A stretch of DNA of 62,750 nt, the filler included, from Trichosphaerium sp. ATCC 40318 (taxonomy: Eukaryota > Protista > Tubulinea): NCBI GenBank assembly GCA_038496445.1. It is 3 parts of 3 records of this genome, joined end to end, with 100 filler letters (N's around TTAATTAATTAA, not from the genome) between each part and the next. Parts side by side here need not be neighbours in the genome. Positions count along the whole stretch, not along the records: positions 1 to 30,632 come from JALMLS010000248.1; 2 more parts are not named here. One strand, given 5' to 3'. The position numbers and the translations under genes were made by a program. The notes beneath the pieces were generated by a model. That model saw only the letters and a program-made list of their open reading frames with translations. It did no database searches and was not told the DNA's origin. This document shows, in pieces, positions 1 through 28,200 of this stretch; positions within the stretch are counted from its first letter, which is position 1, and each line of letters opens with the position of its first letter.

Positions 1-103
1 CAGGTCGAGCAGATCGGTAGTAAGATTTGCTAAATGTCACGTCATGAATTTAAAAATTTTGCATCGTTTAGTTATTTGCAGGAATATCTAATCAAGTTGA
101 TAG
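1..103 (+). CDS. rps14: mitochondrial ribosomal protein S14, 3' part (cryptogene, 5'-truncated by window)
   Basis: Restoring single bases gives GRARSVVRFAK-SRHEFKNFASFSYLQGISKSSW*; the C-terminal G..KSSW is typical of S14, with W = TGA followed by TAG. Confidence 0.75.
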
Positions 104-487
104 TGTTTTATCTTTGGCTTTTGCTGTATCTAATATACGTGTAGTTTACTTTATAGGCATAGTATGTATATTTATCTTTAATAAAAAAGTTTTAAATTAC
201 TACATCTATTTAAAATAGAAGTTGCATTATGTTATATGTTTTACATAACATCAGATAAAGGTTTTTTAAGTACATTGGAGTAACACCGATAATAAAAACA
301 ATGCGCTAGTTAGTACGCCAGGAAGCGAGAGTTTATGTCTTTTATTCATTTGAACGTTTTTTTTCAAAAAAAGAGTATATTTTGTTTATTTATAATATCT
401 ATATCAAATGGTGAATAAGTAGTAATGATTTTTACCTAAAAAATATAAAAGAATAGGTGGAGAGTGTTATTAAAAATTAGTTTAAAT
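104..487 (+). CDS. rps8: mitochondrial ribosomal protein S8 (cryptogene)
   Basis: Frameshifted motifs LVSTPG(K)R-Y, IIS-SNG, IGGE-LLKI; follows rps14 as in the ancestral spc cluster; boundaries approximate. Confidence 0.65.
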
Positions 488-1754
488 GTTATAGTGTAGC
501 TAAAAATAACTGTTTTGAAATGAATACGTTTATTTGACGTTATTTACGTAACTCAAGAAAAATTAAAGTAATGTGGGGTCGTTAAAAAACAAGTTTTTGC
601 AAGTGTTTTTTTTAAAGTAGCTATTTTAACACTAAATTTTGGTCCGCAGCATCAGCAGCTCATGGTGTATTAAGACTAGTAGTAAAATTATATGGGAAAC
701 TGTTATTGAAATAGATACTCATATAGGTTATTGCATAGAGGTACTGAAAAGTTAATAGAGTATAAACCTACTTGCAAAGTTTGCCTTATTTTGATAGGTT
801 AGATATGTATCTATGATGGTCAAGAACAAGTTTATGTTAAAGCAGTTGAAATTTATTAGGAGTGAGTATCCGTTACGTGCAAAAGTATACGCGTTATTTT
901 TATGGATTAACACGTATTTTAAATCATTTATTGCTCTAACAACACATGCGTTAGATCTTGTGCATTAACACCTTTTCTCTGAGCGTTTGAAGAAGGGAAA
1001 AGGTGTTGGAATTTTATGAAAGAGTATCAGTGCGAGGTTTCATGCAGCATATTTTAGACCTGGCGTTTAGTGAACGATATACACCAACACTAATATCTGA
1101 TATAGGATCTTTTTTGAATCATTTATATATAGAATTTTTGATTAGAAGATTTAATAAGAGATAATAGAATATTTAGCAGCGTTTAGTAAATATAGCTATA
1201 GCACCTTTTAGGATGGCAGTTGATTATGGTTTTCTGGAGTTATTTTAAGTCCGTTGGTTTTTGTTGAGATTTAAGAATCATGCAACCTTACGAGTGTATA
1301 ACTTACTTAAGTTTAAAATACCTGTGGAGTTTATGGTGATTGTATGATCGTTTTATGTTGCGTATTTTGGAAATGAAAGAAAGCGTAAGATAATTAAGCA
1401 GTGTTTAATATATATGTAAAATTTAAATTACAAAGTGTTAAAGTAAATAATTATAAGTATTACCACCAGCAAAGCATTTAATGAAGACAAGTATGAAGCT
1501 ATAATACATTTCTTTAAATATTTTTCAGGTGTCCTAGTGTAAATACGGAGAAACTTATAGTATAGTAGAGCACCTAAAGGTGAATTGGTGTATTTTTAAA
1601 ATCAAATGGATCTACAAGCCGGTGAGATGTCGAATAAAATCACCAGGTTTTTACACCTTCAGGCATTAGATTCTTTATCTAGCATGGTATGTTAGCAGAT
1701 ATGGTTGCCGTAGTAGGATCTTTAGATTTAGTTTTTGGAGAAATTGATAGATAA
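486..1754 (+). CDS. nad7: NADH dehydrogenase subunit 7 (cryptogene)
   Basis: Motifs LNFGPQH(P)AAHGVLRL, HIGLLHRGTEK, PYFDRLDYVSMM, EAPKGE and LDLVFGEIDR* (stop 1752-1754), broken by many -1 frameshifts; start uncertain. Confidence 0.92.
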
Positions 1755-1838
1755 GAATTTAAAAAAATTATTATTGAAATTTATATAGTTTAGAAAAAAG
1801 AGTAATAAAAAAAAAAAAAAAGTAAAAAAAAAAAAAAA

Positions 1839-2072
1839 ATGGAATGACAAATAGTATTAGCAGCAAAAGTATTAGCAGCAGGAGTATGTACTGTCGGTGT
1901 AGGAGGAGCAAGTATAGGTATAGGTATAGTTTTTGGAGGTTTATTAATAGCAGTATCTAGAAATCCTGAATTAGAAGCTAATTTATTTAGAACAGCACTT
2001 TTAGGTTTTGCTTTATCTGAGGCGATGGGTTTATTAGTTTTAATGATGTCTTTTTTAATTATGTATACATAG
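1839..2072 (+). CDS. atp9: ATP synthase subunit c, intact 77-aa ORF (TGA=Trp at codon 3)
   Basis: MEWQIVLAAKVLAAGVCTVGVGGASIGIGIVFGGLLIAVSRNPELEANLFRTALLGFALSEAMGLLVLMMSFLIMYT; RNP loop and catalytic Glu present; no frameshift. Confidence 0.96.
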
Positions 2073-2299
2073 TAAAAAAGACATCATTAAAAGGATAGTT
2101 TATTTTTTATATTAGTAGAATATCGCATATATTCTTTGTAGTTCTGTTTTTTTTTTTTTTTTTTTTTCTATAAAAAAACATCTGTTAGTATAGGGGATTT
2201 TATTTTTTTTTTTTATTTAAATCTTTAAATTTTTTTATTAATTTAAAGAGTAAAAAAAAGTAAAAGTTTTCTATTAGAGTTTTTACTTTTATTATATAT

Positions 2300-4830
2300 T
2301 AAGTATTAAGGGGATTACTAGGTATCAAGAAAAAAGACGCTTTAATAAAGCGAAAACTTTAATTGAGTAGTACAATGCTATGATTTTTAGGTATCTTTTT
2401 AAATTTTTAAAATAGAAAAATAAAAATAGGGAAGTGAAACATCTCAGTACCTATAAAAAAAACATCGTGTAGAAACGTTAGTAGTGGTGACAAATGCGTT
2501 GAGTTCTTTTAAGTAGAGAAAATCGAATAGGCAGTGCCTGCTGCTAAAGTAAGAATTTTTTGATAACCGATAGTGTAAAAGTACTGTGAAGGAAGTTGAA
2601 AAAGATATCGTAGGGATAGTTGAAAAGAAATGAACTTAATACTTTAACGGTTGGAGTATAAAAAAGATATGACAGCGTACTTTTGTATAATGGGCCAATG
2701 AGTATATTTTTGAGCAAGCTTAACTTTAAGGGAGGCGTAGTGAAAGCAAAGAGTAAATCTGTAAAGTCTAAAAAATATGACCGAAACCAAGTGATCTAAC
2801 AACACCAAGTTTTTGGCTGAACCGGTGTCTGTTGCAAGAGGCTCGATGAGTGTTGGTTAGGAGTGAAAGCTAATCAAACTTGGTGATAGCTGGTTTTCTG
2901 CGAAACTTGTTTAAGCAAGCGTATTTTGATTTTGTAGAGTATGGCACTAATATTATTCCGGAGTAACTAAGTTATTTACGGGTATAGTGAAACCAAGATG
3001 TTATAAAAATAAAAAAGTATAGAAAGACTTAGGTGCGAAGATTCTAGTCGAGAGGGAAAAAGCCCAGACTATAAGCTAAGCCCTTAAATAATAATCAACT
3101 GGAAAGACGTAATAAAAGCGGAGATGGGCTAGAAGCAGCCATTCTTTAAAGATGCGTAAAAGCTCACGTATTGTTTTTTAAGCGTCATGATGTAAGGGGC
3201 TCTAAATTATTTGCGAAGCTATAGAATTAATTTGGTAGCAGATGTATTGTATGTAAAAAACTGTACGTGAGTTTGGTTAAAATATCAATAGTATAAATGT
3301 TGCATGAGTAGCTTTATATGTAAAAACATTATTACGAAAGATTAAGGTTTCCTTATCTATGTTAAACAGATAAGGGTTAGCGGTCCTTAAGGGAATGTGT
3401 TTGTAAGATTCCGACTAAGGTTATATTAGTTATATTCAGAGCAATTTTATAGAAATTTAATTACAAAAAATAGTTATTGTAATCGTAAAATATCAATTTT
3501 TTTGTAACTTACAAGAAAAAAATAAAAAAAAAAAACGTACCAATAACCGACACAGGTAATTAGTTGTAGAACAATAAGTAATAGAAGAATAATGCTTAAG
3601 GAACTCGCAAAATAACTCAGTAACTTCGGGAGATAGGTACCTAAAATATTGTTTTTTAAAATAAATTAAAAGTGAAAATAATTTATTTTTAAGAAGTATT
3701 TTGGGGGAAGCGGAACAGAGAAGAGCGACTGTTTACTAAAACACAGGACCCTGCTAAATAGTATATGAAGTATAGGTTCGATGCCTGCCCGTGCTGTATC
3801 GTGAAAAGGATTTGTTTAAAAGCAATGAATATAAGCAGCAGTAAACGCGGCCGTAATCCTTGACGTCTTAAGGTAGCGAAATTCCTAGCTATTAATTGTA
3901 GTCCTGCATGAAGCGTAACGACTCTTCTACTGTCTCAAGTGTTATTTTAGTGAATTGAAGTTTTCGTGAAGATGCGAAAAAATTGCAGCGGGACGGAAGA
4001 CCCTGTGCACTTTACTAAAACCTTGTATGGGTTAAGGAAAGCAAAAACACAGTATAATCAAGAGGTATGATTTAATGGTTTAGGTCATTTAAGGAGCCGT
4101 CAGTGGATATTGATTTTTTGTTGGAAAAATCTAATCTTAGTAGAAATTAAAAATGCATGGTGGATAGTTTGTCTGGGGCGAAGCTCCCTAAAAGGTAACG
4201 GAGTGTACAAAGGCTAATTCAGGACGTTAAAGTTCCGTAGTGCATATGGTTTTTATTTTAGCTGACTGTAAGCTTGAAAGGGTTAACAGGGATTTAAAGT
4301 CGTCATAGTTTTCCGGATGCGCTTACAGGTAGGGCATCCGCAAACGGATAAAAGTACGCCAGGGATAACAGCTTATTGCCTTTGAGAGTTCTTATCTGCG
4401 AGCGGTTTGGCACCTCGATGTCGGCTCATCTCATCCTGGGGGAGTAGGCTCCCAAGGGTACGACTGTTCGTCGTTTAAAGAGGTACGTGAGCTGGTTTAG
4501 AACGTCGTGAGACAGTTTGCCCCTATCTGCTGTGATAAAAATTAAAATTAGAGCCCAATGCAGTACGAGAGAGGCGTTATGGTAATAGGGTGCACCGCTT
4601 GTGGTAGCGTTATCGGTTTTACGTTCCGGTTGGCGTTAAAGCTACGTGCGAAAAAGGAACTGCTGATAACATATAAGTAGAATCTGCTAATTTTAATTTA
4701 TATTTATGATTCAATATCAGGATTAAATATGGTAGTAAAAAAAATATTGTAAAATAATGTTATATATATTTTTTTTACAACTGTAAAAAAAATATATATA
4801 AGGTAGTTTTTTGACTAGATTCCATTAATT
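2300..4830 (+). rRNA. rnl: mitochondrial large subunit rRNA (lacking several universally conserved nucleotides)
   Basis: Conserved LSU blocks GAAGTGAAACATCTCAGTACC, GATAGCTGGTTTTCTGCGAAA, TAAGGTAGCGAAATTCCT, GGCACCTCGATGTCGGCTC, AGAACGTCGTGAGACAGTT; ends approximate. Confidence 0.93.
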
Positions 4831-4899
4831 AAGTTTTTAATAAAAGTAGAGAAAAAAAAGATTTTTAATAAATAAAAAGTATATTATAAATTAAAAATA

Positions 4900-6310
4900 A
4901 TGTATTTATTAAGTTTTTATCAATATTTATGTTACATTAAGAGTGGTCATGTTCAACAAATCATAAAGATATAGGATGCTATATATATGAGCAAGTTTTT
5001 TTGGAGGAGTATGGGAACTATATTATCATGATAATACGTATAGAATTAGGAATGCCTGTCCGTTAATTTTGGTTCAAGATAACAAGTTTATAATGTAATC
5101 GTAACAGCGCATGTCTATTAATGATTTTTTTTTTCGTTATGCCTTTATTAATAGGGGTTTAGGTAATTTTATAGTTCATTAAGTTTAGGGGCCCCGGAGA
5201 TGCATTCCCAAGAGTAAATAATTTAGGTTTCTGATTATTGCGCCTTCTTTATTATTATTAATGTGATCTTTGTTATAGGAGATGGTGCAGAGCAGGATGA
5301 ACTTTATATCCATTACTTTCTGTATTAAGGCTAGTCCTGGAATGTCATAGATGCTTGTATTTTGAGTTGCATATAGCCGGAATTTCATCAATATCGGTGC
5401 AATAAATTTTATGGTAACTATAATGAATATGCGATTATGGATACTTATAGAATTGGTTGTTTGCAGTATCATTTATATAACAGCGGTATTATTATTATTG
5501 ACATTACCTGTTTTAGAGGAGCTTTAGTTATGTTAATAACAGATCGTATTTTAATACAACATTTTTTGATCCACAGGAGGTGGAGATCCTGTTTTATATC
5601 ACATATTTTTTGATTTTTTGGACATCAGAAGTTTATATATTAATATTACCAGCTTTTGTATAACTAGTGTAGTAATTTCTGTTGAACTTATAAAGAGGTT
5701 TATGTCATGATTCTATGGTTTATGCATGGTATGTATAGCAGTTTTAGGATCTATTGTATGAGTCATCATATGTTTACAGCGGGTTTAGATGATGATACGA
5801 GGTATATTTTATGACAGTAACTATGATAATAGCAATGCCTTCAGGGTTAAAGTTTTTGGTTGTTATCAACAATAATGTTTGTATAGTAGAATGAAGAGTT
5901 CCGCTATTTTATGCTGCAGATTTGTACTAATGTTTAGTTTTGGAGTGTAACTGGTATTATTTTAGCAAACGTGTTTTAGATATAGCATTGCATGATACAT
6001 ATTATGTGTTGCTCATTTTCATTATGTTTTATCTTTAGTTCTGTGTTTGGAATTTTTGCGGGTTTTATCATTGAAGTTCTTTAATGTTTGGAAAAAAATA
6101 TCCGATTTTATAGGAAGATTACAATTTTGGGAAATTTTATAGGAGTAAATATGACTTTTTTGCCAATGCATTTGTTAGGATGGCGGGTATGCCCAGAAGG
6201 ATAGTGATTATCCAGATGCTTATGTTGCTTTAAATTTTTGATGTTCTGTTGGGCGTTATTTACTATCTGTGTTTATTTTTATTTATTTTATGTTATATTT
6301 TATGTCTATA
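4900..6310 (+). CDS. cox1: cytochrome c oxidase subunit 1 (cryptogene); 3' end uncertain, may extend toward ~7100
   Basis: [83 protein letters not shown], recovered only by restoring single bases. Confidence 0.96.
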
Positions 6311-7101
6311 GGAGAGTTTTTATATTTTATATTGTATACTCTTATGAAGATGCCTATGAGATTTAGTTGAAGATTACTTTTTAACAAAAGAGAGATCTTA
6401 TTTTTAAAGATAATTATAATTTTGGTGAGGATAAAGTTAGAAGTTTAAATGGTGTATTAGTCTTTAACTGTTTTTATTTTTTCGTGTTAAATCCAAATAC
6501 AGGAATTTTGAGTGTGCAAGTATACCTTTGAATTATGTAAGAAAAGGATTGATGGTGTATCTACTCATTATTTGGTGCTAATATTAATTTAATGTTATAT
6601 TTATCTAGAAAGTATAAGAGGTTTTTTTAAATGGTTTTGTAGTCATAGATAGTTGAAGTTAAAAAAATTTGTATAGTGAAAATAGATAGAAAATCTCTAC
6701 GCTACTCTTCTTTGATTATTTAGTTTTTTTAAATTTTATTAGCGTCTTTTTCTTTCGTTTTTATGATCTTATAAAGTTTTTATTTTAAATTTTATTTAAA
6801 AGGTTTAGTTTTAGAGTGCGTGTTTTTAAACATATAAGAAATTACGTAGATAAATTTATTTTTAGGTCATTTTTTATATCTTTTTAGTATGATTTAATTT
6901 ATATAAAAGTTTATTATAGAAAATTATAATATGTTTTAGTATATATCTTATATACTAAATAATTTTGCGCATATTTTTTGCTTTATAAAAAGTTCATATA
7001 TATAGGAAAATAGGATTGTGCATCCACAAATTTTAATGAACTAAAAATAGGAAAAGTACGTGAAGAGAAGGAAAAAAGGATTACTTTATTATGATTAAGT
7101 T

Positions 7102-7574
7102 ATGAAAAATTTTATTTTAGTTGGTGTAATATTAAAAAGTAAGGAGCAATTTCAGTAAATTTATCTGCGTTAGGGGGCTTTGTAGACGAAGGGTAGTAGA
7201 ATATGTTTTAACTTAGGTATATCGCCTTGCGAAAATTTGAGCAATTGGAATTTTAGGAAAGGGATGATTTTAAAGTATTATCTTTTTTCTAATTATTATT
7301 TAGGTGAAAGGTTATGTGAGAATTAAAAAATATATAAGAAGATATACAGATCTTATAGTAATAGAGGTTAAAGTTACTAAGTGGTTTACCTGTAAATGTC
7401 AACGAAGTAAGACTATGGTAAAACATCAAAATCTTTTAAATTGTGAAGACAAAAGAATTTGGAACCAAAATTTCAGATGAAATTATAAATGGTAAAATAA
7501 AAAATAAAAGAATAACTAAAAGACGTTTAAGAAAAAAAAAGAAAAAGAAAAAGAAGAAAAATAAATATATTTAA
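7102..7574 (+). CDS. rps13: mitochondrial ribosomal protein S13 (cryptogene) with Lys-rich tail
   Basis: Motif GLPVN(G)QRSKT(N)GKT matches S13 GLPVRGQRTKTNART; also ICFNLGISP. Confidence 0.75.
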
Positions 7575-7665
7575 AGTATATATGCAGTGTATTTTGTGTA
7601 GTGTAATAGAGTAATTTATATAGGTATTGTTAAGTTTAAAATATAAAAAAAGAAGAAAAATTATC

Positions 7666-9072
7666 ATGTTTAATTTTGTAATATTAAAGAAATATGTAAA
7701 AAGTGAGCTCCTATCATTTTTGGTTCTTTGGTTTGTATTGAATTCAATACATTACATGGCGGGGTGTTTTATAAGTGTTTTTAAATTTTATTTTTTATTT
7801 AGTAAAGAATTAGTATTTTATAATAATCCTTTTTTTAAAGAAGATTTGATAAATAATTATGCTTTATTAGCGAAAGGGAGGGTTCATTTTTTTGAATGGT
7901 TAAGCTTCGAGGGGGGAGGCTTAACCTTAACGTTCTTTAATGAAGAAAAAAGCAGAGAAGAAATAGTGGATAAGTTAGACAATTTAGTACCTATAGATCC
8001 AACAGTGGTAGCAGATCTATATACGCAACTAGCTAGCCAAGGATATAGTTTAACTTGAAGCTATAGTGCGTTTGCTTCTATGATCTTATGATTAGTTATG
8101 TGTTCTATTTATTATCATTTTTTTATTAATTCTATGCTTAATTTAGAAGAAATAAATAATTTTATTCTATTTATGCAAAATGATAAAGAGTTTATAAAAA
8201 AAAAAATAGTAGATCATATAGGTGAAATTGAGCAAAGTCAAGATGCTGATTTTTTTAATTTTGTAACTTATACTTTAGAAAACGAAGGAATAATAATAGA
8301 AGAAAGTAATTTGTCAGTTATGTTTGAGAATTTAAGCTGAGTAGAATTTATAATTGAAAATTATGATATAAGTGAAAAAAATGTAAATTTAATAGTAGAA
8401 TTAAAAAAAATAATGTTAGAAAAAAAAAAAGCAATGGAAATAGATAAAGAAAATTTAATTGAACAAACTACTAAATATTTTGAAAATCAGCTAGATATTT
8501 TTTTTAATTATTTAACAAATACTTGTGTTAAACATAACGTTGATTTAAGTATTGTGCAAGATTATCCTAAATGAAAAGAATTTATAAAAAAAAAAAAGAA
8601 AGGTGAAGAATTAGCAGATTTAGAGAGTAGTTACAGTGAAAACATTCATGATGCTGTTTTAAATTTTTCTAAAAATTATGAAGAGAATTTACGTAACTAT
8701 TACGAAAATTTATGAAGAGATATTAAAAAGGATGAACTTGTTTGATGAATGGATTGATATACTATAATAGATAGTATAAATGAAATTTGAAAAGATAAAA
8801 TTATAAGCATGCTTGAAAAAGAAAGAGAGTTCGTTTTTATAGAAACTTTATATTCTTTTTTAGATTTAATTGTTCTTGACAAATTAGTAACTTTTGCAAG
8901 CTTTGGGGAGACTTTTTTTATACTTCCTATTTTATGAATAAGTTTGTCTCCTGTAAATTTTGATAAATTTGTTAATTGACATTATGTATTTTTTACTTGA
9001 CTTTTTAAAAAACTTTGATTTTTTTTAAAAAGATTAATTGAATATCTTTTAGAAAAATTTGGTTATTTCTAA
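7666..9072 (+). CDS. orphan mitochondrial ORF468, unedited, Glu/Lys/Phe-rich with hydrophobic segments
   Basis: Track ORFs 7627-8058 and 8098-8340 join into one 468-aa frame ending TAA 9070-9072 when 13 in-frame TGA are read as Trp. Confidence 0.8.
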
Positions 9073-9110
9073 AAGATATTCAATTAATCTTTTTAAAAAA
9101 AATCAAAGTT
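9012..9110. repeat. ~45-bp-stem hairpin overlapping the ORF468 stop codon
   Basis: AACTTTGATTTTTTTTAAAAAGATTAATTGAATATCTTTTAGAAA followed after a short loop by its reverse complement. Confidence 0.9.
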
Positions 9111-9173
9111 ATCTCCCTTCTTTTCCCCCTGTTTAATTAAAATATAAAAAAAAGTAAAAAAAAACACCCCAAA

Positions 9174-11257
9174 ATGTGAGAATCAGAAATGGTAGGTATA
9201 AAGCGATTAATCGAGTAATTTTGGTACCGAGTGGCGAACAGCAATCCAAGGTTTAGATGTATTAATTTAAATTTACCAAGATTATGTTATTTTGAAAAAT
9301 TAGGAATATTGGGAACTGCAGATTATGTTTAATAGAGACAACTAGAACGTCTAATTAGAAATAGCATGTAGTGTACCTCTAGTATCAGGTTTAGTTATAA
9401 GAAAATATCTTTAAGATAGAGATTGCTAGAGAAAATGTAATGGAATATTTACTATGTAATCATCCGTTGGATTGTCCAATTTGTGATCAGGCGGGTGTTG
9501 TGATTTACAAGATATTTCTTTTATTTTTGGGATGATAGAGGAAGATACATGAAAAAAAAAAAAGGTCAGTATTAGGTTTTTTTGTTGAGAATTAACAAGC
9601 ACATATATGACAAGTGTATTCAGTGTGCTAGTGTGTTTTGTTTAGCTTAGAAGTATTTGGTAGTTTTGGTTTAGTTTTTTAGGTCGTGGCATGTTTTTAG
9701 AATTAGTACGTATAGAGAAAAAATAATTACGGAGAATTAACAACAAATTTTATAGCAGTATGTCCTGTAGAGCATTTACCTTGAAGCCTTTTGAGTTTGC
9801 GTCTAGAAAATGGGAGCAGTTGTTCAGGATACTTTAGATGTTAATGATGTGTTAGAGGAAATTTAACAATGATGTAATTTTTATATATATAGTTCGAACT
9901 AAAGCAAGTTAAATGAATTTTTAATATAGAATGATTAACTAATAAAGCAAGATTTGCGTTTACAGTTTTTATTTTAAACGGTTATGGGGATGTAGATTTA
10001 GGTTTTTTGACAAGAAAATAGAGAAAAATAAGATCAACTCATATAAGCGTAAGTTGATCTTATTTAATCTCATGATGGTTATGACTATACAAATCGTTAA
10101 ATTTTACATTTTAGTATAAGAGTAGTTTTGATATTAAAGTGTAAATAGCATTAGAAATTTTATGAATAATATAGGAGTGTAATAACAGATTGTATTGTGT
10201 AAATTATAACAAATATGGTATTTTATTTGTGAATTGATTTCGAAATTGCTTTGTTTGATTGCTTTTTTATATGTTTTCTGATATTCGTTTAGAATTGCCT
10301 TTATTAGGTTACTGATTAAGAAAGTTTGATTTGAAAAACTAATGAAATATTTTACTGTTGGTTAGGTGTAAAGTCTATATACTTAGGTGTAATAATATAG
10401 GCTGTACTATAAAGAATTATTATATTTAGCTTTGGTGTAGGGCTAATTGTAAAGAAAGGTTCGCTGAAAAAAATCAAAATATGTTTAGTAGATGGGAAGG
10501 TATACTAATTTAAAAGAAGTGTGGTATTATACAACAAAAGTTTAAATTTAAATATAAAATGAGAAAGTAAGAATAATTTAGGAATTTTATAAGTCAAGAT
10601 ATTTCAAGGTTAATTTTAGTTTTTTAGGGTTATTAGGCTTGCAAAAAAAGGTGTAAAAAAAAAACAAATTCAAAGCATAATTTGAATTTGTTTTTTGGGC
10701 AAGGAGAATAAACAGAATAAATTTATTAAATATAGATTAAGTAAATTTATTCATCTAAATTATAATTTACGTAAAAATTTAGGGCGTGAGTAGATGTAGC
10801 GGTGCCAGATTGGTCTATACGGAAAAAGATGTTGATATTCTAATATAGAAAATGTTTTACAAAAAGTTACAAGGTAATGCGTCTTTTGAGTTGAAAAAAA
10901 TGTAATTTCTATTTTATTTTTCAATAATTTACTGTTGGTATATTGCTCAAAATACTATACTTTTTATGAAAATATACATATTATTAATATGTATATTTTC
11001 ATAAAAAGTATAGTATTTTGAGCAATATACCAACAGTAAATTATTATTGTATTTTTCCTAGGTAATGTTTTTTTTGTTGGGGAAAAATAGTTTTATAAAA
11101 AAGTAATTATGAAAAGAAGTATAATAAAGTGTTTTTAAACTGATTGTTATCGTAAGTTTTTTTATTTGTAATTACTTTAAGATAACAATGAATATGTTAA
11201 ATCGTCAAAATATTTGCGGCAACAGGTAGAAACAGTATAGTAATAGTATAAATTTTA
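9174..11257 (+). CDS. nad11: NADH dehydrogenase subunit 11 (75-kDa Fe-S subunit; cryptogene)
   Basis: [53 protein letters not shown]; many -1 frameshifts; end approximate. Confidence 0.88.
10923..11045. repeat. perfect ~60-bp-arm palindrome inside nad11
   Basis: AATAATTTACTGTTGGTATATTGCTC...ATACATATTA mirrored immediately by its reverse complement. Confidence 0.92.
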
Positions 11258-11275
11258 AAAAAGAGTAAAAAAAAA

Positions 11276-11416
11276 ATGGAATGACAAATAGTATTAGCAG
11301 CAAAAGTATTAGCAGCAGGAGTATGTACTGTCGGTGTAGGAGGAGCAAGTATAGGTATAGTTTTTTATTTGTTTTCTTATAAATATAGTTTTAATTTAAT
11401 GGAAAAAGTATATTAG
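11276..11416 (+). pseudogene. duplicated atp9 5' segment fused to unrelated sequence (46-aa chimeric ORF)
   Basis: First 28 codons plus the upstream A-tract are identical to atp9 at 1839; the frame continues VFYLFSYKYSFNLMEKVY*. Confidence 0.8.
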
Positions 11417-11662
11417 AGTGAATAGGTTCTTTTGGTATTTATAATGTTGGGTTCAAAATATAAATAAAAGAGAAATATTGTGGAAAGTGTGATATTTATA
11501 AATATTTGATTTTGTAGGTTTAGGGTTTTTTTTTTTACATTAATTATTAGTTATAATTTATTTTTAATTTTAATTTTTATAATATTTTTTATATGAATAT
11601 TAACGATTTTTTTTTTGCTTTTTTATAACAATGTTATAAAAAAGCAAAAAAAAAATGTTATT

Positions 11663-12733
11663 ATGTTATGAGGAATGGATCCTATGGCGTTAGCTGTGGG
11701 AGGTATTGGGTATGTAGACATAGGTTTTGGTTTTGCAGCCACTTGTATTATAGGAGTAATAGTAGGCGTGATGGTGGTAGTAAATAGAAGATCAGCATCA
11801 GAAGAAGGAGAAAAAAATATAGAAGGAGAAAAGAAAGAAGAAGAAAAAATAGAAGGAGAAAAAATAGAAGGAGAAGAAAAAATAGAAGAAGAAAAAATAG
11901 AAGGAGTAGAAAAAATAGAAGGAGAAAAAATAGAAGAAGAAAAAATAGAAGGAGTAGAAAAAATAGAAGGAGAAAAAATAGAAGGAGAAAATATAGAAGG
12001 ATTAGAAAAAATAGAAGGAGAAAAAATAGAAGGAGAAAATATAGAAGGATTAGAAAAAATAGAAGGAGAAAATATAGAAGGAGAAAATATAGAAGGATTA
12101 GAAAAAATAGAAGGAGAAAATATAGAAGGAGAAAATATAGAAGGATTAGAAAAAATTTTTGATTGAATAAAAGAGTGAGAATTGTATAACAGTGAAAATT
12201 TAAAAATTTATTTAGAAAACAGTGTTTCAGCATTATCTAAAAAAAATGTAGTGTGTTATATAGACGTCTGTATAAATAGTCTGAAATTGAAATTAGAAGA
12301 ATTATTTGCTTATTTTAATACTAAAGAAAACATAAAAACCTTAGATTTAGAAAATTTAAGAGCAATAAAAAAAAATTTATATGATTTGATAGAAGTTTTT
12401 GACTGGCAAGCTACAGATGTAGGAAAACTGTCCAAGTATTTTAAGGATCAAATGCATAGATTTGTGGAGAATAATGCATCGCTATTAGAGGCCCGACGTG
12501 ATTTATGGGCAAAGCTTTTAGAAAAATATGGATTACTGCAAGATATATTATGAGGGATTGTTAAGTCTAGATCAATAATAAAAGAGGCAATAAAAAAAAA
12601 ATTATCAATATTAGATAAAGAAATAGAAAACAGATGAAGCGAATGATTTTATGAAAAAGGCGTTGATTTTTATTATTTTATAACCAACATGCTGGGAAAT
12701 ATATATGAATTTTTTTCTTATTTTTTTACTTAA
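11663..12733 (+). CDS. orphan mitochondrial ORF356, unedited: N-terminal TM segment, acidic pentapeptide repeats, helical C-terminus
   Basis: Track ORFs 11675-12166 and 12182-12553 join through TGA=Trp to TAA at 12731-12733; in-frame ATG at 11663. Confidence 0.8.
11805..12158 (+). repeat. tandem 15/18-nt repeats encoding EGEKI/EGENI/EGLEKI/EGVEKI
   Basis: GAAGGAGAAAA(A/T)ATA-type units iterated about 20 times. Confidence 0.92.
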
Positions 12734-12943
12734 ACTACTTATAGTTTAAGTAAAAAAATAAGAAAAGTGTGTAAATTTTGAAAAAAAAGAATGTTATTTG
12801 TATTATAAATGAATATTTAAAAAAGATAGTTATTTGTTTATAATTTTTTATAGTTTCAAGGGAAGAAGCGAAATTAAAAATAAATTAAGTTCTTTATTTT
12901 ATTTTTTTTGTTTTTTAGTAATTTTAAATATATTAATAAAATA

Positions 12944-13877
12944 ATGTTAGTTATTTTAAAGTTTATTATTTTATTATTTTAATGTTTCCGTTTATTTTTG
13001 CGGAGCATTATTAACTTTATGGAAAGAAAAGTTATGGCTGGTATCAAAGAAGGAAAGGACCTATGTAGTAGGTTTATATGGTTTATTACAGCCATAGCTG
13101 ATGGGTTGAAATGATTTGAAAAGAAACAATAATTCCTCAATACGCTATGGTATTTTATTTGTTTTTGCTCCTTGTGGTTGTTATTTTTATCTTAGTTCTT
13201 TTATCCTTATTACCTTTGTCTTTTAAAATGTAATCATAGATATAGATATAGTTTGATGTTGATATTTGTTATATCGTCATTAGGTGTTTATGTTTAATTT
13301 TTGCGGGTTGGGCAAGTAACTCAAAATATGCTTTTTTAGTGCAATAAGAGCTGCTGCCCAAATGATTTCTTATGAGTTCCTTTTGGTTTAGTTATTATTA
13401 TATTGGTGCTTGAGCAGGTACGTTAAATCTTATAAGTGTAGTTAATTTACAAAAGATACTATTTTATTTTTATATGCGCCTGAGCGGCAATAATTTTTAT
13501 AGTGACAATATTAGCAGAGACTAATAGGCCACCTTTCGCAGATTTACCAGAGGCAGAAGGTGAATTAGTGTCTGTTATAATGTTGAATATTCTTCATGGG
13601 TTTTGTTTGTTTTTTTCTTTCTGATATATAAACATGATTATATTAAGTATTTTGTTTGCCAATTTATTTCTTGGCGAAATATTTTTTTTTATAATGATTT
13701 GTGGAAGGAATTCCTATTTTTTGTATATTAAAAGTTTATTAATAATGCTTATGTTTATTTGGTTAGAGCTTCATTACCTAGATATAGATATGATCATTTA
13801 ATGAGTTTAGGTGAAAAACTTTGTTACCTATAACGGTAGGGTTTTATTGTTTAATAGTGAATAGCTTTGGGAGGTAA
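12944..13877 (+). CDS. nad1: NADH dehydrogenase subunit 1 (cryptogene)
   Basis: ERKVMAG-QRRKGP-VVG-YGLLQP-ADG, GWASNSKYAF, RAAAQMISYE, AETNR-PF-DLPEAEGELV, RASLPRYRYD. Confidence 0.92.
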
Positions 13878-13887
13878 GTAATTTTAT

Positions 13888-14469
13888 ATGGTAGTTTTTT
13901 AGGTTAATTATGCGTTGAATTAGAGAGTTTTTGCTTTTGAATTTATTTTAGGTCTTTTATTAAATCTTTTGGACATATTTAAGAACTTTTATAGGATCTT
14001 GTAAAGATATGGCGATTTGTGGTTTTTATTTTTTTGGTTAAAATTAAGTGAGCGCATGCTGAAAATCATTGTTAGATATTTTTGTGTAGATAATAGTGCA
14101 GCTGCTGTAAATTGAAGGTAGCTTACGTTTTTTCAAGTTTATTTAAAATCGTAGAATAAGATTAGAAGGTTTTGCATATAAAAAAAGAGGTAGTTTATTT
14201 ACATCGTGTAAAATTTTTAGATCAGGTTTGTGGTTAGAAAGAGAGCGCAAGATTTATTTGGCGTATACTTTTCGGGAATGTAGATATGCGTAGAATTTTA
14301 TTAGACTATACTTTTAGAGGTTTCCTTTAAGAAAGGATTTTCCATTAACAGGTTATTATGAGTGAGATATGATGATCAAGGAAAGGTATAGTTTATGAAC
14401 GGTAGAGCTAACACAGGATTATCGCATGTTTGATTTTGATATGAATGAGTAGAAAAAATGTGAAGATAA
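13888..14469 (+). CDS. nad9: NADH dehydrogenase subunit 9 (cryptogene)
   Basis: WLERE-QDLFGVYF, DMRRILLDY-FRG-PLRKDFPLTGYYE-RYDD, VELTQDYRMFDF. Confidence 0.9.
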
Positions 14470-14482
14470 AAAATTAAAGAAA

Positions 14483-14760
14483 ATGGTAATTTTAGATTAT
14501 TGTTGTGTATTTTTACATCATCGGGGTTATAATAACTTCCAAAGTATATTAGAAATGTTAATAAGTTTAGAGTTATTAGAGTTTTAATCTACGTTCTTGC
14601 TTTGGTTTTGCAGTCGTAACGGATATTTCTGTAGGTGTATATTAGGTATCATCATAATTATAGGAGCAGCAGCCCAATCGCGATTGGACTGGCGATATTG
14701 TGACAATATCGCGAACTTTAAAAAGTGTTTCAGTAGATATGTATCTTTAATAAAAGTTAA
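14483..14760 (+). CDS. nad4L: NADH dehydrogenase subunit 4L (cryptogene)
   Basis: MLISLELL and IIIIGAAAQS-IGLAI match nad4L motifs; size about 90-95 codons. Confidence 0.75.
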
Positions 14761-15258
14761 ATGTTTATTTTTAAAGAATTTAGTTTAAGATTAAAAATAA
14801 AGTAAATAATCTATTTGTTAAAAGTACTGGTGTTATTTAGTCTTTTTATTATCGTTATTTTATGTAGATAGTGCAATATTGATAAAGATGATATTTTTGA
14901 AAAATTATTAGAAATTTAAAATTTAAGCCGAGTTTATTCAAGTCAGAATTTAGTTTGGATAATTTTATAGAAGTAATATTAATATTTTAGAAGGATTAAT
15001 AAAAATACGTTGCAAATAAAAATATAGAATGTTTAAAGAATTTGTTTAAATGTAATTTTTATTAGCGGGATTATTGAATGGCAAAGATTACGCAATTTAA
15101 GTTAGTAAAATCTACGTCGTAGATTTTACTAACTTAAATTGCGTAATCTTTGCCATTCAATAATTTAATAAATTATTCAGGTGTAATATAGGAGGTAGGA
15201 AATAAAAATAAAAATTATATAAAATATCAGGAAAATAAGGCATCTTTATGTTGTTGAT
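14761..15258 (+). CDS. possible divergent ribosomal protein L6 (cryptogene)
   Basis: Weak resemblance only (LFVKSTG near the start, R-LP-N..YSG and K-SGK near the end). Confidence 0.35.
15070..15164. repeat. perfect ~47-bp-arm palindrome
   Basis: ATTATTGAATGGCAAAGATTACGCAATTTAAGTTAGTAAAATCTACG-T-reverse complement. Confidence 0.92.
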
Positions 15259-15382
15259 ATTTAATTTTATTTATTTTTTATTTTTTTTTATTTTTTTTAT
15301 TATATTATATTATATTTTTATACTATATAGTTTTATAATTTTAACTTCAGTGAATTTAAGAACGTAAAAATTTAAAATAACA

Positions 15383-15823
15383 TGCGATGGTTAGATTTAG
15401 TGAAAAGGATCAACAAATAGTTTATTTAGTTATAGAACGCGTATGTAACTTCTTTAATAAAAAAAGAAAAAAAATTCGTGCGGTGATTTGTATTTTAAAA
15501 TATATATGTGATTAAAGGAGCAAAATAGTGGAGTCCTTCTACTATTTTGCAGTTGCTTTTAGGCGTTCACACCGTTCTTTTGCCTAAAACAGTTGTTTTA
15601 GGCAAAAGAACGGTGCAGTACCCATGTATGTTAATGAGCGGAAAAGAGAACAATGGTAGTGTTCTGGTTACCAGAAATGTAAAGCCTAGGTTCAGTTATA
15701 GCAATTAGCAGGTGAATTATTAAAGGCATCCATAGGGCAGGGATTTGTAATTTGGAAAAAAAAAAATGCTTATTGAGGGGTTACCTATAGGCACCAAAGT
15801 TTTCGTTTATTTATAGGGGGGTA
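15383..15823 (+). CDS. rps7: mitochondrial ribosomal protein S7 (cryptogene)
   Basis: NFFNKK-KK-RA, VVLGKRTV-VPMYVNERKRE, LAGELLKASIGQG-V-WKK; start uncertain. Confidence 0.7.
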
Positions 15824-15876
15824 AGAGTAAATATAAGGATAGACGTAATTTAAAAATAAATATAAATATTAAAAAT

Positions 15877-16489
15877 GATAAAAGTAAAGCGCTGGTGAAT
15901 CAATTATTTGTAGATTGAATATTTTTTGGTTCTTTAAAGAAGATACAAATTATTTAAGTGGTTGGTGTATTTTAGAGAATCCTATAAAATGTGTATTTTA
16001 GAAATGGATATATGTTTCAAGGATTTCATATATAAATAAATTAATAAGATGAGGTTTAGAGAGAGAGGTGCCGTGTTGTTTGCGAATTACGCGTTATTTT
16101 TAGAAGGTTAACTAAGCAGCTGCATATTTATGTGACAACCTTATGTAGCAGTGCGTGAAGAGAAGGAACTTTAACAAATTTTAGGTTATAGTAAGATGAT
16201 GGGTTTATTGATAACAGAGATGCTAGAGCAAGTGATAAATTTGGAGAACAGTTAGAAGGTTACAAATGCGTTATAAATTACCTGTTGAGTGTTTTTAAGT
16301 GCAGCTTGAAGAGTTTAAATATGTACGGGAATCAAGGGGTGTTAGGGTTCCGTCGGTAGTGTTGTTAGTTCAGATGGGTTAGTTCAGTGGTGGATTGTTG
16401 TTTAGCAGGGACACAAAAACATTTAAAAGTCAGTATTATTTTAACAGTTGGATGTTGATTATGTATATATAGAAAAGCAAAAAAAATAA
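15877..16489 (+). CDS. rps2: mitochondrial ribosomal protein S2 (cryptogene), ending in the hairpin apex
   Basis: W(TGA)REGTLTNF matches S2 W-GG-LTN; also VRESRGVRVPSV-VVSSD and VDCCLAG-. Confidence 0.7.
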
Positions 16490-16570
16490 TATATAGGGGT
16501 GTAAATTTAAAATTTAGGAATTTTAAATTTACAAGTTGATTTAATTTTTTTTTGCTTTTTATATATACAT
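16461..16570. other. imperfect AT-rich hairpin apex of the giant inverted repeat
   Basis: Core GTAAATTTAAAATT-TAGG-AATTTTAAATTTAC, flanked by a mismatched bubble (~16486-16499 vs ~16534-16545) before perfect pairing resumes. Confidence 0.85.
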
Positions 16571-17154
16571 AATCAACATCCAACTGTTAAAATAATACTG
16601 ACTTTTAAATGTTTTTGTGTCCCTGCTAAACAACAATCCACCACTGAACTAACCCATCTGAACTAACAACACTACCGACGGAACCCTAACACCCCTTGAT
16701 TCCCGTACATATTTAAACTCTTCAAGCTGCACTTAAAAACACTCAACAGGTAATTTATAACGCATTTGTAACCTTCTAACTGTTCTCCAAATTTATCACT
16801 TGCTCTAGCATCTCTGTTATCAATAAACCCATCATCTTACTATAACCTAAAATTTGTTAAAGTTCCTTCTCTTCACGCACTGCTACATAAGGTTGTCACA
16901 TAAATATGCAGCTGCTTAGTTAACCTTCTAAAAATAACGCGTAATTCGCAAACAACACGGCACCTCTCTCTCTAAACCTCATCTTATTAATTTATTTATA
17001 TATGAAATCCTTGAAACATATATCCATTTCTAAAATACACATTTTATAGGATTCTCTAAAATACACCAACCACTTAAATAATTTGTATCTTCTTTAAAGA
17101 ACCAAAAAATATTCAATCTACAAATAATTGATTCACCAGCGCTTTACTTTTATC
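16561..17154 (-). CDS. rps2: mirror copy of rps2 (3' end differs within the apex)
   Basis: Reverse complement of 15877-16470. Confidence 0.65.
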
Positions 17155-17207
17155 ATTTTTAATATTTATATTTATTTTTAAATTACGTCTATCCTTATAT
17201 TTACTCT

Positions 17208-17648
17208 TACCCCCCTATAAATAAACGAAAACTTTGGTGCCTATAGGTAACCCCTCAATAAGCATTTTTTTTTTTCCAAATTACAAATCCCTGCCCTATG
17301 GATGCCTTTAATAATTCACCTGCTAATTGCTATAACTGAACCTAGGCTTTACATTTCTGGTAACCAGAACACTACCATTGTTCTCTTTTCCGCTCATTAA
17401 CATACATGGGTACTGCACCGTTCTTTTGCCTAAAACAACTGTTTTAGGCAAAAGAACGGTGTGAACGCCTAAAAGCAACTGCAAAATAGTAGAAGGACTC
17501 CACTATTTTGCTCCTTTAATCACATATATATTTTAAAATACAAATCACCGCACGAATTTTTTTTCTTTTTTTATTAAAGAAGTTACATACGCGTTCTATA
17601 ACTAAATAAACTATTTGTTGATCCTTTTCACTAAATCTAACCATCGCA
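17208..17648 (-). CDS. rps7: mirror copy of rps7
   Basis: Reverse complement of 15383-15823. Confidence 0.65.
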
Positions 17649-18270
17649 TGTTATTTTAAATTTTTACGTTCTTAAATTCACTGAAGTTAAAATTATAAAA
17701 CTATATAGTATAAAAATATAATATAATATAATAAAAAAAATAAAAAAAAATAAAAAATAAATAAAATTAAATATCAACAACATAAAGATGCCTTATTTTC
17801 CTGATATTTTATATAATTTTTATTTTTATTTCCTACCTCCTATATTACACCTGAATAATTTATTAAATTATTGAATGGCAAAGATTACGCAATTTAAGTT
17901 AGTAAAATCTACGACGTAGATTTTACTAACTTAAATTGCGTAATCTTTGCCATTCAATAATCCCGCTAATAAAAATTACATTTAAACAAATTCTTTAAAC
18001 ATTCTATATTTTTATTTGCAACGTATTTTTATTAATCCTTCTAAAATATTAATATTACTTCTATAAAATTATCCAAACTAAATTCTGACTTGAATAAACT
18101 CGGCTTAAATTTTAAATTTCTAATAATTTTTCAAAAATATCATCTTTATCAATATTGCACTATCTACATAAAATAACGATAATAAAAAGACTAAATAACA
18201 CCAGTACTTTTAACAAATAGATTATTTACTTTATTTTTAATCTTAAACTAAATTCTTTAAAAATAAACAT

Positions 18271-18548
18271 TTAACTTTTATTAAAGATACATATCTACTG
18301 AAACACTTTTTAAAGTTCGCGATATTGTCACAATATCGCCAGTCCAATCGCGATTGGGCTGCTGCTCCTATAATTATGATGATACCTAATATACACCTAC
18401 AGAAATATCCGTTACGACTGCAAAACCAAAGCAAGAACGTAGATTAAAACTCTAATAACTCTAAACTTATTAACATTTCTAATATACTTTGGAAGTTATT
18501 ATAACCCCGATGATGTAAAAATACACAACAATAATCTAAAATTACCAT
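18271..18548 (-). CDS. nad4L: mirror copy of nad4L
   Basis: Reverse complement of 14483-14760. Confidence 0.72.
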
Positions 18549-18561
18549 TTTCTTTAATTTT

Positions 18562-19143
18562 TTATCTTCACATTTTTTCTACTCATTCATATCAAAATCA
18601 AACATGCGATAATCCTGTGTTAGCTCTACCGTTCATAAACTATACCTTTCCTTGATCATCATATCTCACTCATAATAACCTGTTAATGGAAAATCCTTTC
18701 TTAAAGGAAACCTCTAAAAGTATAGTCTAATAAAATTCTACGCATATCTACATTCCCGAAAAGTATACGCCAAATAAATCTTGCGCTCTCTTTCTAACCA
18801 CAAACCTGATCTAAAAATTTTACACGATGTAAATAAACTACCTCTTTTTTTATATGCAAAACCTTCTAATCTTATTCTACGATTTTAAATAAACTTGAAA
18901 AAACGTAAGCTACCTTCAATTTACAGCAGCTGCACTATTATCTACACAAAAATATCTAACAATGATTTTCAGCATGCGCTCACTTAATTTTAACCAAAAA
19001 AATAAAAACCACAAATCGCCATATCTTTACAAGATCCTATAAAAGTTCTTAAATATGTCCAAAAGATTTAATAAAAGACCTAAAATAAATTCAAAAGCAA
19101 AAACTCTCTAATTCAACGCATAATTAACCTAAAAAACTACCAT
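18562..19143 (-). CDS. nad9: mirror copy of nad9
   Basis: Reverse complement of 13888-14469. Confidence 0.88.
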
Positions 19144-19153
19144 ATAAAATTAC

Positions 19154-20087
19154 TTACCTCCCAAAGCTATTCACTATTAAACAATAAAACCCTACCGTTA
19201 TAGGTAACAAAGTTTTTCACCTAAACTCATTAAATGATCATATCTATATCTAGGTAATGAAGCTCTAACCAAATAAACATAAGCATTATTAATAAACTTT
19301 TAATATACAAAAAATAGGAATTCCTTCCACAAATCATTATAAAAAAAAATATTTCGCCAAGAAATAAATTGGCAAACAAAATACTTAATATAATCATGTT
19401 TATATATCAGAAAGAAAAAAACAAACAAAACCCATGAAGAATATTCAACATTATAACAGACACTAATTCACCTTCTGCCTCTGGTAAATCTGCGAAAGGT
19501 GGCCTATTAGTCTCTGCTAATATTGTCACTATAAAAATTATTGCCGCTCAGGCGCATATAAAAATAAAATAGTATCTTTTGTAAATTAACTACACTTATA
19601 AGATTTAACGTACCTGCTCAAGCACCAATATAATAATAACTAAACCAAAAGGAACTCATAAGAAATCATTTGGGCAGCAGCTCTTATTGCACTAAAAAAG
19701 CATATTTTGAGTTACTTGCCCAACCCGCAAAAATTAAACATAAACACCTAATGACGATATAACAAATATCAACATCAAACTATATCTATATCTATGATTA
19801 CATTTTAAAAGACAAAGGTAATAAGGATAAAAGAACTAAGATAAAAATAACAACCACAAGGAGCAAAAACAAATAAAATACCATAGCGTATTGAGGAATT
19901 ATTGTTTCTTTTCAAATCATTTCAACCCATCAGCTATGGCTGTAATAAACCATATAAACCTACTACATAGGTCCTTTCCTTCTTTGATACCAGCCATAAC
20001 TTTTCTTTCCATAAAGTTAATAATGCTCCGCAAAAATAAACGGAAACATTAAAATAATAAAATAATAAACTTTAAAATAACTAACAT
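19154..20087 (-). CDS. nad1: mirror copy of nad1
   Basis: Reverse complement of 12944-13877. Confidence 0.9.
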
Positions 20088-20297
20088 TATTTTATTAATA
20101 TATTTAAAATTACTAAAAAACAAAAAAAATAAAATAAAGAACTTAATTTATTTTTAATTTCGCTTCTTCCCTTGAAACTATAAAAAATTATAAACAAATA
20201 ACTATCTTTTTTAAATATTCATTTATAATACAAATAACATTCTTTTTTTTCAAAATTTACACACTTTTCTTATTTTTTTACTTAAACTATAAGTAGT

Positions 20298-21368
20298 TTA
20301 AGTAAAAAAATAAGAAAAAAATTCATATATATTTCCCAGCATGTTGGTTATAAAATAATAAAAATCAACGCCTTTTTCATAAAATCATTCGCTTCATCTG
20401 TTTTCTATTTCTTTATCTAATATTGATAATTTTTTTTTTATTGCCTCTTTTATTATTGATCTAGACTTAACAATCCCTCATAATATATCTTGCAGTAATC
20501 CATATTTTTCTAAAAGCTTTGCCCATAAATCACGTCGGGCCTCTAATAGCGATGCATTATTCTCCACAAATCTATGCATTTGATCCTTAAAATACTTGGA
20601 CAGTTTTCCTACATCTGTAGCTTGCCAGTCAAAAACTTCTATCAAATCATATAAATTTTTTTTTATTGCTCTTAAATTTTCTAAATCTAAGGTTTTTATG
20701 TTTTCTTTAGTATTAAAATAAGCAAATAATTCTTCTAATTTCAATTTCAGACTATTTATACAGACGTCTATATAACACACTACATTTTTTTTAGATAATG
20801 CTGAAACACTGTTTTCTAAATAAATTTTTAAATTTTCACTGTTATACAATTCTCACTCTTTTATTCAATCAAAAATTTTTTCTAATCCTTCTATATTTTC
20901 TCCTTCTATATTTTCTCCTTCTATTTTTTCTAATCCTTCTATATTTTCTCCTTCTATATTTTCTCCTTCTATTTTTTCTAATCCTTCTATATTTTCTCCT
21001 TCTATTTTTTCTCCTTCTATTTTTTCTAATCCTTCTATATTTTCTCCTTCTATTTTTTCTCCTTCTATTTTTTCTACTCCTTCTATTTTTTCTTCTTCTA
21101 TTTTTTCTCCTTCTATTTTTTCTACTCCTTCTATTTTTTCTTCTTCTATTTTTTCTTCTCCTTCTATTTTTTCTCCTTCTATTTTTTCTTCTTCTTTCTT
21201 TTCTCCTTCTATATTTTTTTCTCCTTCTTCTGATGCTGATCTTCTATTTACTACCACCATCACGCCTACTATTACTCCTATAATACAAGTGGCTGCAAAA
21301 CCAAAACCTATGTCTACATACCCAATACCTCCCACAGCTAACGCCATAGGATCCATTCCTCATAACAT
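20298..21368 (-). CDS. mirror copy of ORF356
   Basis: Identical track ORFs at 20865-21356 and 20478-20849. Confidence 0.78.
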
Positions 21369-21614
21369 AATAACATTTTTTTTTTGCTTTTTTATAACAT
21401 TGTTATAAAAAAGCAAAAAAAAAATCGTTAATATTCATATAAAAAATATTATAAAAATTAAAATTAAAAATAAATTATAACTAATAATTAATGTAAAAAA
21501 AAAAACCCTAAACCTACAAAATCAAATATTTATAAATATCACACTTTCCACAATATTTCTCTTTTATTTATATTTTGAACCCAACATTATAAATACCAAA
21601 AGAACCTATTCACT

Positions 21615-21755
21615 CTAATATACTTTTTCCATTAAATTAAAACTATATTTATAAGAAAACAAATAAAAAACTATACCTATACTTGCTCCTCCTACACCGA
21701 CAGTACATACTCCTGCTGCTAATACTTTTGCTGCTAATACTATTTGTCATTCCAT
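21615..21755 (-). pseudogene. mirror copy of the atp9 5' chimeric fragment
   Basis: Reverse complement of 11276-11416. Confidence 0.75.
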
Positions 21756-21773
21756 TTTTTTTTTACTCTTTTT

Positions 21774-23857: not shown

Positions 23858-23958
23858 TTTGGGGTGTTTTTTTTTACTTTTTTTTATATTTTAATTAAAC
23901 AGGGGGAAAAGAAGGGAGATAACTTTGATTTTTTTTAAAAAGATTAATTGAATATCTT

Positions 23959-25365: not shown

Positions 25366-25456
25366 GATAATTTTTCTTCTTTTTTTATATTTTAAACTTA
25401 ACAATACCTATATAAATTACTCTATTACACTACACAAAATACACTGCATATATACT

Positions 25457-28131: not shown

Positions 28132-28200
28132 TATTTTTAATTTATAATATACTTTTTATTTATTAAAAATCTTTTTTTTCTCTACTTTTATTAAAAACTT

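Follow-up and report, generated by a model that had tools for sequence, protein, structure and literature searches.

Single-base insertional RNA editing by neighbour copying in mitochondrial cryptogenes of a contig assembled for Trichosphaerium sp. ATCC 40318

How can mitochondrial genes be expressed if their recognizable signals change reading frame every few codons? The question is raised by the first 30,632 bp (JALMLS010000248.1) of the window analysed here, a stretch of 62,750 nucleotides, filler included, taken from the genome assembly of Trichosphaerium sp. ATCC 40318 (GCA_038496445.1). Translated under genetic code 4 (TGA=Trp), this piece displays signals of cox1, nad7, nad1 and nad11 that are spread over all three frames, switching every few codons, whereas atp9 is open. 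Our analysis indicates that the core genes are very probably cryptogenes, the transcripts of which regain one nucleotide per site, a copy of a neighbouring base, so that reading frames and rRNA are restored. A sequence-only reading of positions 1–16489 had already proposed insertional RNA editing for this DNA; its claims are taken up below where the results bear on them. The features that carry the main evidence are the following.

587–1754, + strand: nad7 cryptogene; 37 single-base insertion sites documented at 594–1683; contig L009 with 0 mismatches; Complex1_49kDa ORF (open reading frame) of 397 aa
1839–2072, + strand: atp9; open in DNA, unedited; Pfam ATP-synt_C, E=2.8e-12; one in-frame TGA (codon 3)
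2287–4742, + strand: large subunit (LSU) rRNA gene; Rfam LSU_rRNA_bacteria, 898.8 bits; at least 50 edited sites, ~1 per 45 nt
4921–6450, + strand: cox1 cryptogene; ~48–50 single-base insertion sites (alignment, with 41–48 missing and 0–1 extra bases, and RNA contigs)

Bases absent from DNA and present in RNA

Proteins were aligned to the DNA with codons of 2 nt (one base missing) and of 4 nt (one base extra) allowed at equal penalty. Against seven protist cox1 reference proteins, the cox1 region required 31–48 missing-base events and 0–1 extra-base events; with a 240-aa reference for nad7, the counts were 22 and 0 over 813–1501. Missing bases thus predominate in both genes, in agreement with the sequence-only reading, which at every site that it reconstructed traced the loss of frame to one missing base and never to an extra one. 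That reading had counted about 16 sites in cox1 4978–5394, and the alignment places exactly 16 within 4977–5394. The individual sites that it gave as examples were all recovered as well: nad7 CAT C[C]A GCA corresponds to an RNA-documented C insertion at 654, and the best fit at cox1 sites 5626, 5203 and 5290 comes from inserting C, G and G, respectively. Duplication of the neighbouring base at the predicted cox1 sites recovers conserved residues, including Pro in GHPEV, Gly in GAGAG and Asn in DRNFN, and G is again the commonest restoring base.

Matches to 500–6450 came from a marine metagenome and from runs deposited under the names of about ten organisms. Four runs were compared with this region, among them X16 (transcriptomic), X17 (polyA metatranscriptomic) and X3 (an independent DNA run); the RNA evidence consists of assembled contigs throughout. 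The cox1 contigs from RNA-seq contain 7 insertions over 4916–5157, 10 over 5329–5623 and 26 over 5639–6442, with no substitutions. For the first of these intervals, 7 sites had been predicted from the DNA alone; for the second, the alignment yields 7 sites plus a same-frame stretch able to hide 3, against the 10 insertions in RNA. The LSU rRNA is affected in the same way: contigs from X16 and X17 carry 17, 7, 10, 16 and 3 insertions and no substitutions, at least 50 insertions in total (e.g. 12 over the 405 nt of 2898–3302 and 17 over the 770 nt of 2330–3099). By contrast, the X3 DNA contigs match the present DNA exactly and without gaps at 898–1183, 1221–1530, 1959–2262 and 3198–3412, and X3 lacks every one of the 12 LSU insertions that were listed by base.

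The most complete edited sequence is L009, a JGI contig that encodes the exact atp9 protein (P0100) together with an intact nad7. Compared with 464–2149, it displays no mismatches, 40 single-base insertions and one deletion. The deletion and one of the insertions fall in A15/A16 tracts upstream of atp9 (1807 and 1824), one tract being one A shorter and the other one A longer; these length differences probably represent homopolymer noise rather than site-specific editing. The 37 insertions in nad7 rebuild the protein (…NFGPQHPAAHGVLRL…), and L009 is edited at every site that the nad7 ORF needs. The edited nad7 retains two in-frame TGA codons (in FLWAFEE and FCWDLR) and is therefore a mitochondrial message, not a nuclear gene; with the TGA in atp9, these codons bear out the earlier assignment of TGA to Trp. 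L009 is taken as a transcript because the labelled RNA-seq runs behave alike, whereas the examined DNA contigs never do. Overall, the transcript contigs differ from the DNA solely by frame-restoring single-base insertions, and the insertional RNA editing that the sequence-only reading had proposed is thereby shown directly. Editing spares atp9, for which neither the X17 RNA contig covering 1851–2021 nor L009 has a single insertion.

The same bases are missing in other species. Six contigs of related species, recovered in DNA form from Tara and ENA metagenome assemblies and from one Logan run, display 79–86% DNA identity to the present sequence and lack the same base at 15 out of 15 editing sites covered (nad7 3′ end). 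It follows that the bases are missing from the genomes themselves, that this does not depend on the present assembly, and that their absence is stable within a small marine clade. Furthermore, run X3 contains a diverged relative in which 103 of 720 letters of cox1 4915–5634 are changed without any gaps; the frame structure is therefore common to both. A candidate RNA/DNA pair (L017 versus L018/L019) was rejected, as it reflects ordinary 88% divergence, and a scan of JGI metagenomes with a cox1 26-mer returned other protists only.

The neighbour-copy rule and its possible mechanism

All 52 insertions listed by base (40 in L009 and 12 in LSU rRNA) are identical to an adjacent templated base, compared with ~45% expected by chance. 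The sequence-only reading overlooked this unifying rule, which ties the system to that of the heterolobosean amoeba BB2. Its description of the insertions as G-rich and of mixed base composition holds: in all, G accounts for 30, A for 14, C for 5 and U for 3 of them, L009 contributing 25 G, 9 A, 3 C and 3 U and the LSU rRNA sites listed by base 5 G, 5 A and 2 C. The system is also distinct, as that reading claimed, from the C insertion of Physarum and the U editing of kinetoplastids, C and U accounting for just 5 and 3 of the 52 insertions, all of them neighbour copies. In L009, 28 of the 40 sites have a templated run of just one base, and the insertions are therefore not a product of homopolymer slippage. 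No dinucleotide insertions were observed, nor any deletions outside one A15 tract.

No local motif was found for the choice of sites. Of the 182 G-runs in nad7, 24 are edited, and G-runs are edited 3–10 times as often as runs of other bases; nevertheless, no position from −25 to +25 separates edited from unedited runs after multiple-testing correction. The insertions are unbiased with respect to codon position. Their spacing is regular, with a mean of 30 nt, a range of 16–53 nt and a coefficient of variation (CV) of 0.32 versus 0.93 for random placement; none of 20,000 simulations was as regular. A hard exclusion zone of 16 nt accounts for most of this regularity (mean CV 0.43, P=0.04 for the remainder). 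The density is ~1 site per 30–31 nt in nad7 and cox1 mRNA (3.2% of positions) and 2.2% of positions in LSU rRNA.

The closest known counterpart is the mitochondrial editing of BB2, with 475 mononucleotide insertions in ~70 kb of unique sequence, 84% of them G and 7% A, in which the inserted base is always identical to its neighbour, no motif is found and 0.33% of sites are unedited (Yang et al. 2017, PMC5421314). In both systems only mononucleotides are inserted, always as neighbour copies; G is the commonest and all four bases are used; mRNA and rRNA are edited; and at least one protein gene escapes. The present system is ~4–5 times denser, less dominated by G (58%, 30/52) and richer in A (27%), and, unlike BB2, it keeps a minimum spacing of 16 nt. 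Moreover, BB2 edits all four of its unassigned reading frames (URFs), whereas the present DNA has long unassigned ORFs that are already open. BB2 edits mRNA, rRNA and tRNA; in the present system mRNA and LSU rRNA are edited, and no tRNA genes were found in 16.6 kb. The frameshifted vannellid mitochondrial genes mentioned in the sequence-only reading could not be traced, the open-access literature yielding no report of frameshifts or editing, and the 'massive editing' of ascetosporeans was rejected as a parallel because it is substitutional.

The cryptogenes (nad7, cox1, nad1, nad11, LSU rRNA and probably others) lack single bases at defined sites, and one extra nucleotide is very probably added per site during or just after transcription, always as a second copy of an adjacent templated base. 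For BB2, it was proposed that a single template base serves the polymerase twice (PMC5421314). Given the overall reading, we moderately favour a mitochondrial single-subunit (phage-type) RNA polymerase that would read one template base twice, i.e. site-specific co-transcriptional stuttering. On this view, the exclusion zone of 16 nt would correspond to the footprint of whatever it is that marks a site. The stuttering thus proposed resembles that on paramyxovirus P and filovirus GP mRNAs, in which the polymerase reuses a template base and adds an extra neighbour copy, usually G. Viral stuttering, however, occurs at single slippery homopolymer tracts and gives mixed +1, +2 and further products, whereas the present system adds exactly one base, at sites that are mostly single templated bases and number in the hundreds.

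The main rival to the stuttering step is a post-transcriptional machine, in which trans-acting guides or site-specific factors would direct insertion by cleavage, addition and ligation, much as in kinetoplastids. High site specificity without a cis motif is indeed what trans-acting guides would give, and edited and unedited forms are both found in run X1, although the unedited form may simply be DNA. There is, however, no reason for guides to insert neighbour copies only, and the use of all four bases without deletions also argues against such a machine. The same holds for L009, which is edited wherever the ORF requires it, and for BB2, with its very small fraction of unedited sites and no guide candidates. 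Kinetoplastid U-indel editing and the U insertion of calcareous sponges likewise restore the reading frames of mitochondrial cryptogenes by insertion, but both involve U only, the rarest inserted base here, and the kinetoplastid system, which removes U as well, requires guide RNAs; editing of the kinetoplastid type is excluded by the present data. We consider a guide-directed mechanism unlikely.

Less likely still is editing of the myxomycete type (MICOTREM), in which the polymerase adds non-templated nucleotides and identity with the neighbour would be coincidental. There are genuine resemblances to Physarum polycephalum: both have cryptogenes with one insertion per 25–31 nt in mRNA, fewer in rRNA and evenly spaced, the densities given above lying close to the ~4%, ~2% and 25-nt average of Physarum; in both, unedited unassigned ORFs are interspersed, and in both editing is presumed to be co-transcriptional. 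In Physarum, however, C makes up most insertions, alongside some U and defined dinucleotides; the added nucleotides are non-templated and often unlike their neighbours, C-to-U changes occur as well, and sites shift between species. In the present system G dominates and C is scarce, dinucleotide insertions and substitutions (C-to-U changes included) are absent, every listed insertion equals its neighbour, and sites are kept between species at 79–86% DNA identity. In addition, the organism occurs in marine metagenomes, which also speaks against a myxomycete.

Some protist mitochondria cope with serial frameshifts, for instance in Perkinsus cox1, which would favour translation of unedited mRNA with a programmed ribosomal frameshift at each site; in a variant of this idea, the genes would be pseudogenes with functional nuclear copies. 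The probability of either is negligible, since the RNA contigs examined carry extra bases and are not identical to the DNA, rRNA is affected too, edited nad7 uses TGA as Trp and is hence not nuclear, and edited and unedited forms are separated by zero substitutions. Equally improbable, and already refuted in practice, is the view that the genes are truly intact and that their bases were lost in sequencing or assembly (through errors of long reads or amplification): the contig folds back as a palindrome and has a poor end at 30254–30631, so the assembly is not flawless, but the independent X3 contigs match it exactly across edited stretches, metagenome assemblies of related species miss the same bases, the RNA differences are one-directional and restore ORFs, and atp9 as well as 2.7 kb of AT-rich ORFs are free of frame errors.

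Several points weigh against neighbour-copying editing of cryptogenes as we read it, or against parts of it. Besides the coexistence of two forms in run X1, the RNA support comes from assembled contigs and not from raw reads, and contigs do not give efficiency, strand or timing. L009 is a contig of unlabelled library type. The flanks are featureless within ±25 nt, so simple slippage leaves both the choice of 24 among 182 G-runs in nad7 and the escape of atp9 unexplained. Finally, co-transcriptional timing is borrowed by analogy from BB2 and Physarum.

Gene content and palindromic layout

The remaining features of the piece are as follows.

1–585, + strand: 3′ part of an upstream cryptogene, gene not named; the L009 frame 0 ORF stops just before nad7, with a G insertion at 489 inside the ORF
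2118–2120, + strand: atp9–LSU spacer site; single A insertion at 2119, AA to AAA (L009 versus DNA)
7624–9072, + strand: ORF482; open in DNA; 482 codons stop-to-stop, 468 from the first ATG; 13 in-frame TGA; orphan
9158–10400, + strand, approximate limits: nad11 cryptogene; 9401–9532 matches Pfam NADH-G_4Fe-4S_3 (E=4.6e-9), with flanking motifs in other frames
11267–11360, + strand: 94-bp copy of the atp9 5′ end; 100% identical to 1830–1923 (self-BLAST); heads a chimeric short ORF (11252–11413) just upstream of ORF421
11468–12733, + strand: ORF421; open in DNA; 421 codons, 356 from the first ATG; 8 in-frame TGA; 48-nt tandem repeats at 11803–12156
12960–13830, + strand: nad1 cryptogene; four pieces in alternating frames match Pfam NADHdh in ascending order (105–127, 177–208, 224–268, 262–286)
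16472–16559, no strand: palindrome centre, asymmetric, 88 nt; perfect 15-bp hairpin at 16500–16534, axis at ~16515
16560–30253, − strand: second arm; exact reverse complement of 2777–16471, with the same cryptogenes

The list of cryptogenes in the sequence-only reading stands for cox1, nad7, nad1 and nad11; nad9, nad4L and the five rps genes were not confirmed, with weak scores for nad4L and rps13 only. Searches of Pfam with single-frame fragments were mostly blank, because in-frame runs span only ~9 residues. Plain tblastn with protist references recovered nad7 as the sole gene, and frameshift-aware alignment against rps, rpl, cob, cox2/3, atp6, nad3 and nad5 references gave scores at noise level (50–130). 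The A insertion at 2119 represents either editing outside recognizable genes or a small RNA as yet unrecognized there.

Along with atp9, the two long ORFs that the earlier reading had described as in frame (its ORF468 and ORF356, here ORF482 and ORF421) are open under code 4. ORF482 has no Pfam family, and its N-terminal 130 aa are without a homologue within the length limits of the search. Pfam likewise returned no significant family for ORF421, the repeats of which comprise ~7 tandem 48-nt units, each encoding 16 residues rich in E/G/K/I. The 94-bp copy of atp9 is a repeat of the recombination type and recalls the chimeric ORFs of plant mitochondria.

The piece is AT-rich (~27% G+C), with strong strand asymmetry that flips at ~16.5 kb because it is built as two reverse-complement arms. 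Self-comparison revealed that 2777–16471 is the exact reverse complement of 16560–30253, with 0 differences over 13.7 kb. The stretch 1–16489 is thus one arm of a palindrome, which the sequence-only reading also overlooked, and every feature is present twice. At the contig end, 30254–30631 is a degraded copy of 2396–2776, and inter-arm differences outside the centre are found only there. They include many single-base gaps in which no neighbour is duplicated, as well as a scrambled block of 100 nt at a place where the first arm has genuine LSU sequence; an interpretation of these indels as differences between edited and unedited copies was rejected. This segment looks like a poor-quality contig end, not biology. 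The 28-kb palindrome may be a true inverted repeat, comparable to the 49-kb inverted repeat in the mitochondrial DNA of BB2 (PMC5421314), or a chimera that arose during assembly or amplification by folding back at the central hairpin. Depths in run X1 differ little between the duplicated part and the rest (595 versus 731) and do not discriminate between these options.

Long near-perfect local palindromes of 95–123 nt also occur between genes (9011–9110, 10923–11045, 15070–15164 and 15569–15616) and may be processing or recombination signals; in Rfam they give weak, spurious matches to models of miRNA precursors. No tRNA gene was detected in the 1–16600 arm, nor after in-silico duplication of each run, either singly (10,794 variants) or in pairs (358,665). 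As a control, ARAGORN detected 24 tRNAs in locus L004, described below. Rfam searches of the inner and outer arm ends returned neither rRNA nor tRNA. The tRNAs are thus either encoded elsewhere, imported, or dependent on three or more edits.

Relatives, origin and significance of the editing system

The piece is mitochondrial DNA of a marine protist. The atp9 cluster comprises at least five alleles; outside the clade, the closest atp9 shares 68% identity and the closest nad7 representatives share 53–56%, all of them environmental sequences, and cox1 is 55–63% identical to every reference compared. Cluster names, an exhaustive search with nad7 and the ESM Atlas yielded no taxonomic assignment. 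These comparisons neither support nor contradict the 'amoebozoan-like' affiliation put forward in the sequence-only reading. Related species have an extra ORF of 301–427 aa between nad7 and atp9 (L001:611–1516, L002:233–1516), not present here. These ORFs are unrelated to ORF482 and ORF421; orphan ORFs therefore turn over fast in the clade.

An unrelated mitochondrial genome, represented by L004 (ENA k141_2162330, 57 kb) and L005 (JGI 3300002220), has an atp9 that is 64% identical to the present one. Frame breaks split its cox1, nad5, cob and cox2, 7 out of 7 in the missing-base direction, and three breaks in cox1 are mended by neighbour duplication (G, G, A) at conserved residues. A 20-kb locus of this genome contains 24 tRNA genes. 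Judging from its sequence, this genome probably represents another BB2-type system, of low density.

BB2 was previously the only organism known to have mitochondrial editing by neighbour copying, at low density, and an overview of May 2025 lists no further lineage. We tentatively suggest that at least five uncultured or unrecognized species of marine protists, unrelated to BB2, have independently evolved neighbour-duplicating editing; it would operate near the packing limit of the 16-nt exclusion zone, at hundreds of sites per genome, with sites frozen across species. Such a scenario is possible, if somewhat short of probable.

With a second neighbour-copying system that is about as dense as that of Physarum, has several sequenced relatives and keeps its sites conserved, three questions can be put to a direct test: how a phage-type polymerase picks sites without a local motif, why there is a minimum spacing, and why editing passes over atp9 and certain ORFs. 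In genomes of this kind, standard annotation will overlook most genes, and similar cryptogene genomes are already present, unrecognized, in public metagenomes. If the L004/L005 genome is indeed a further, low-density case, editing by reading one base twice would be recurrent and widespread in mitochondria rather than a peculiarity of BB2.

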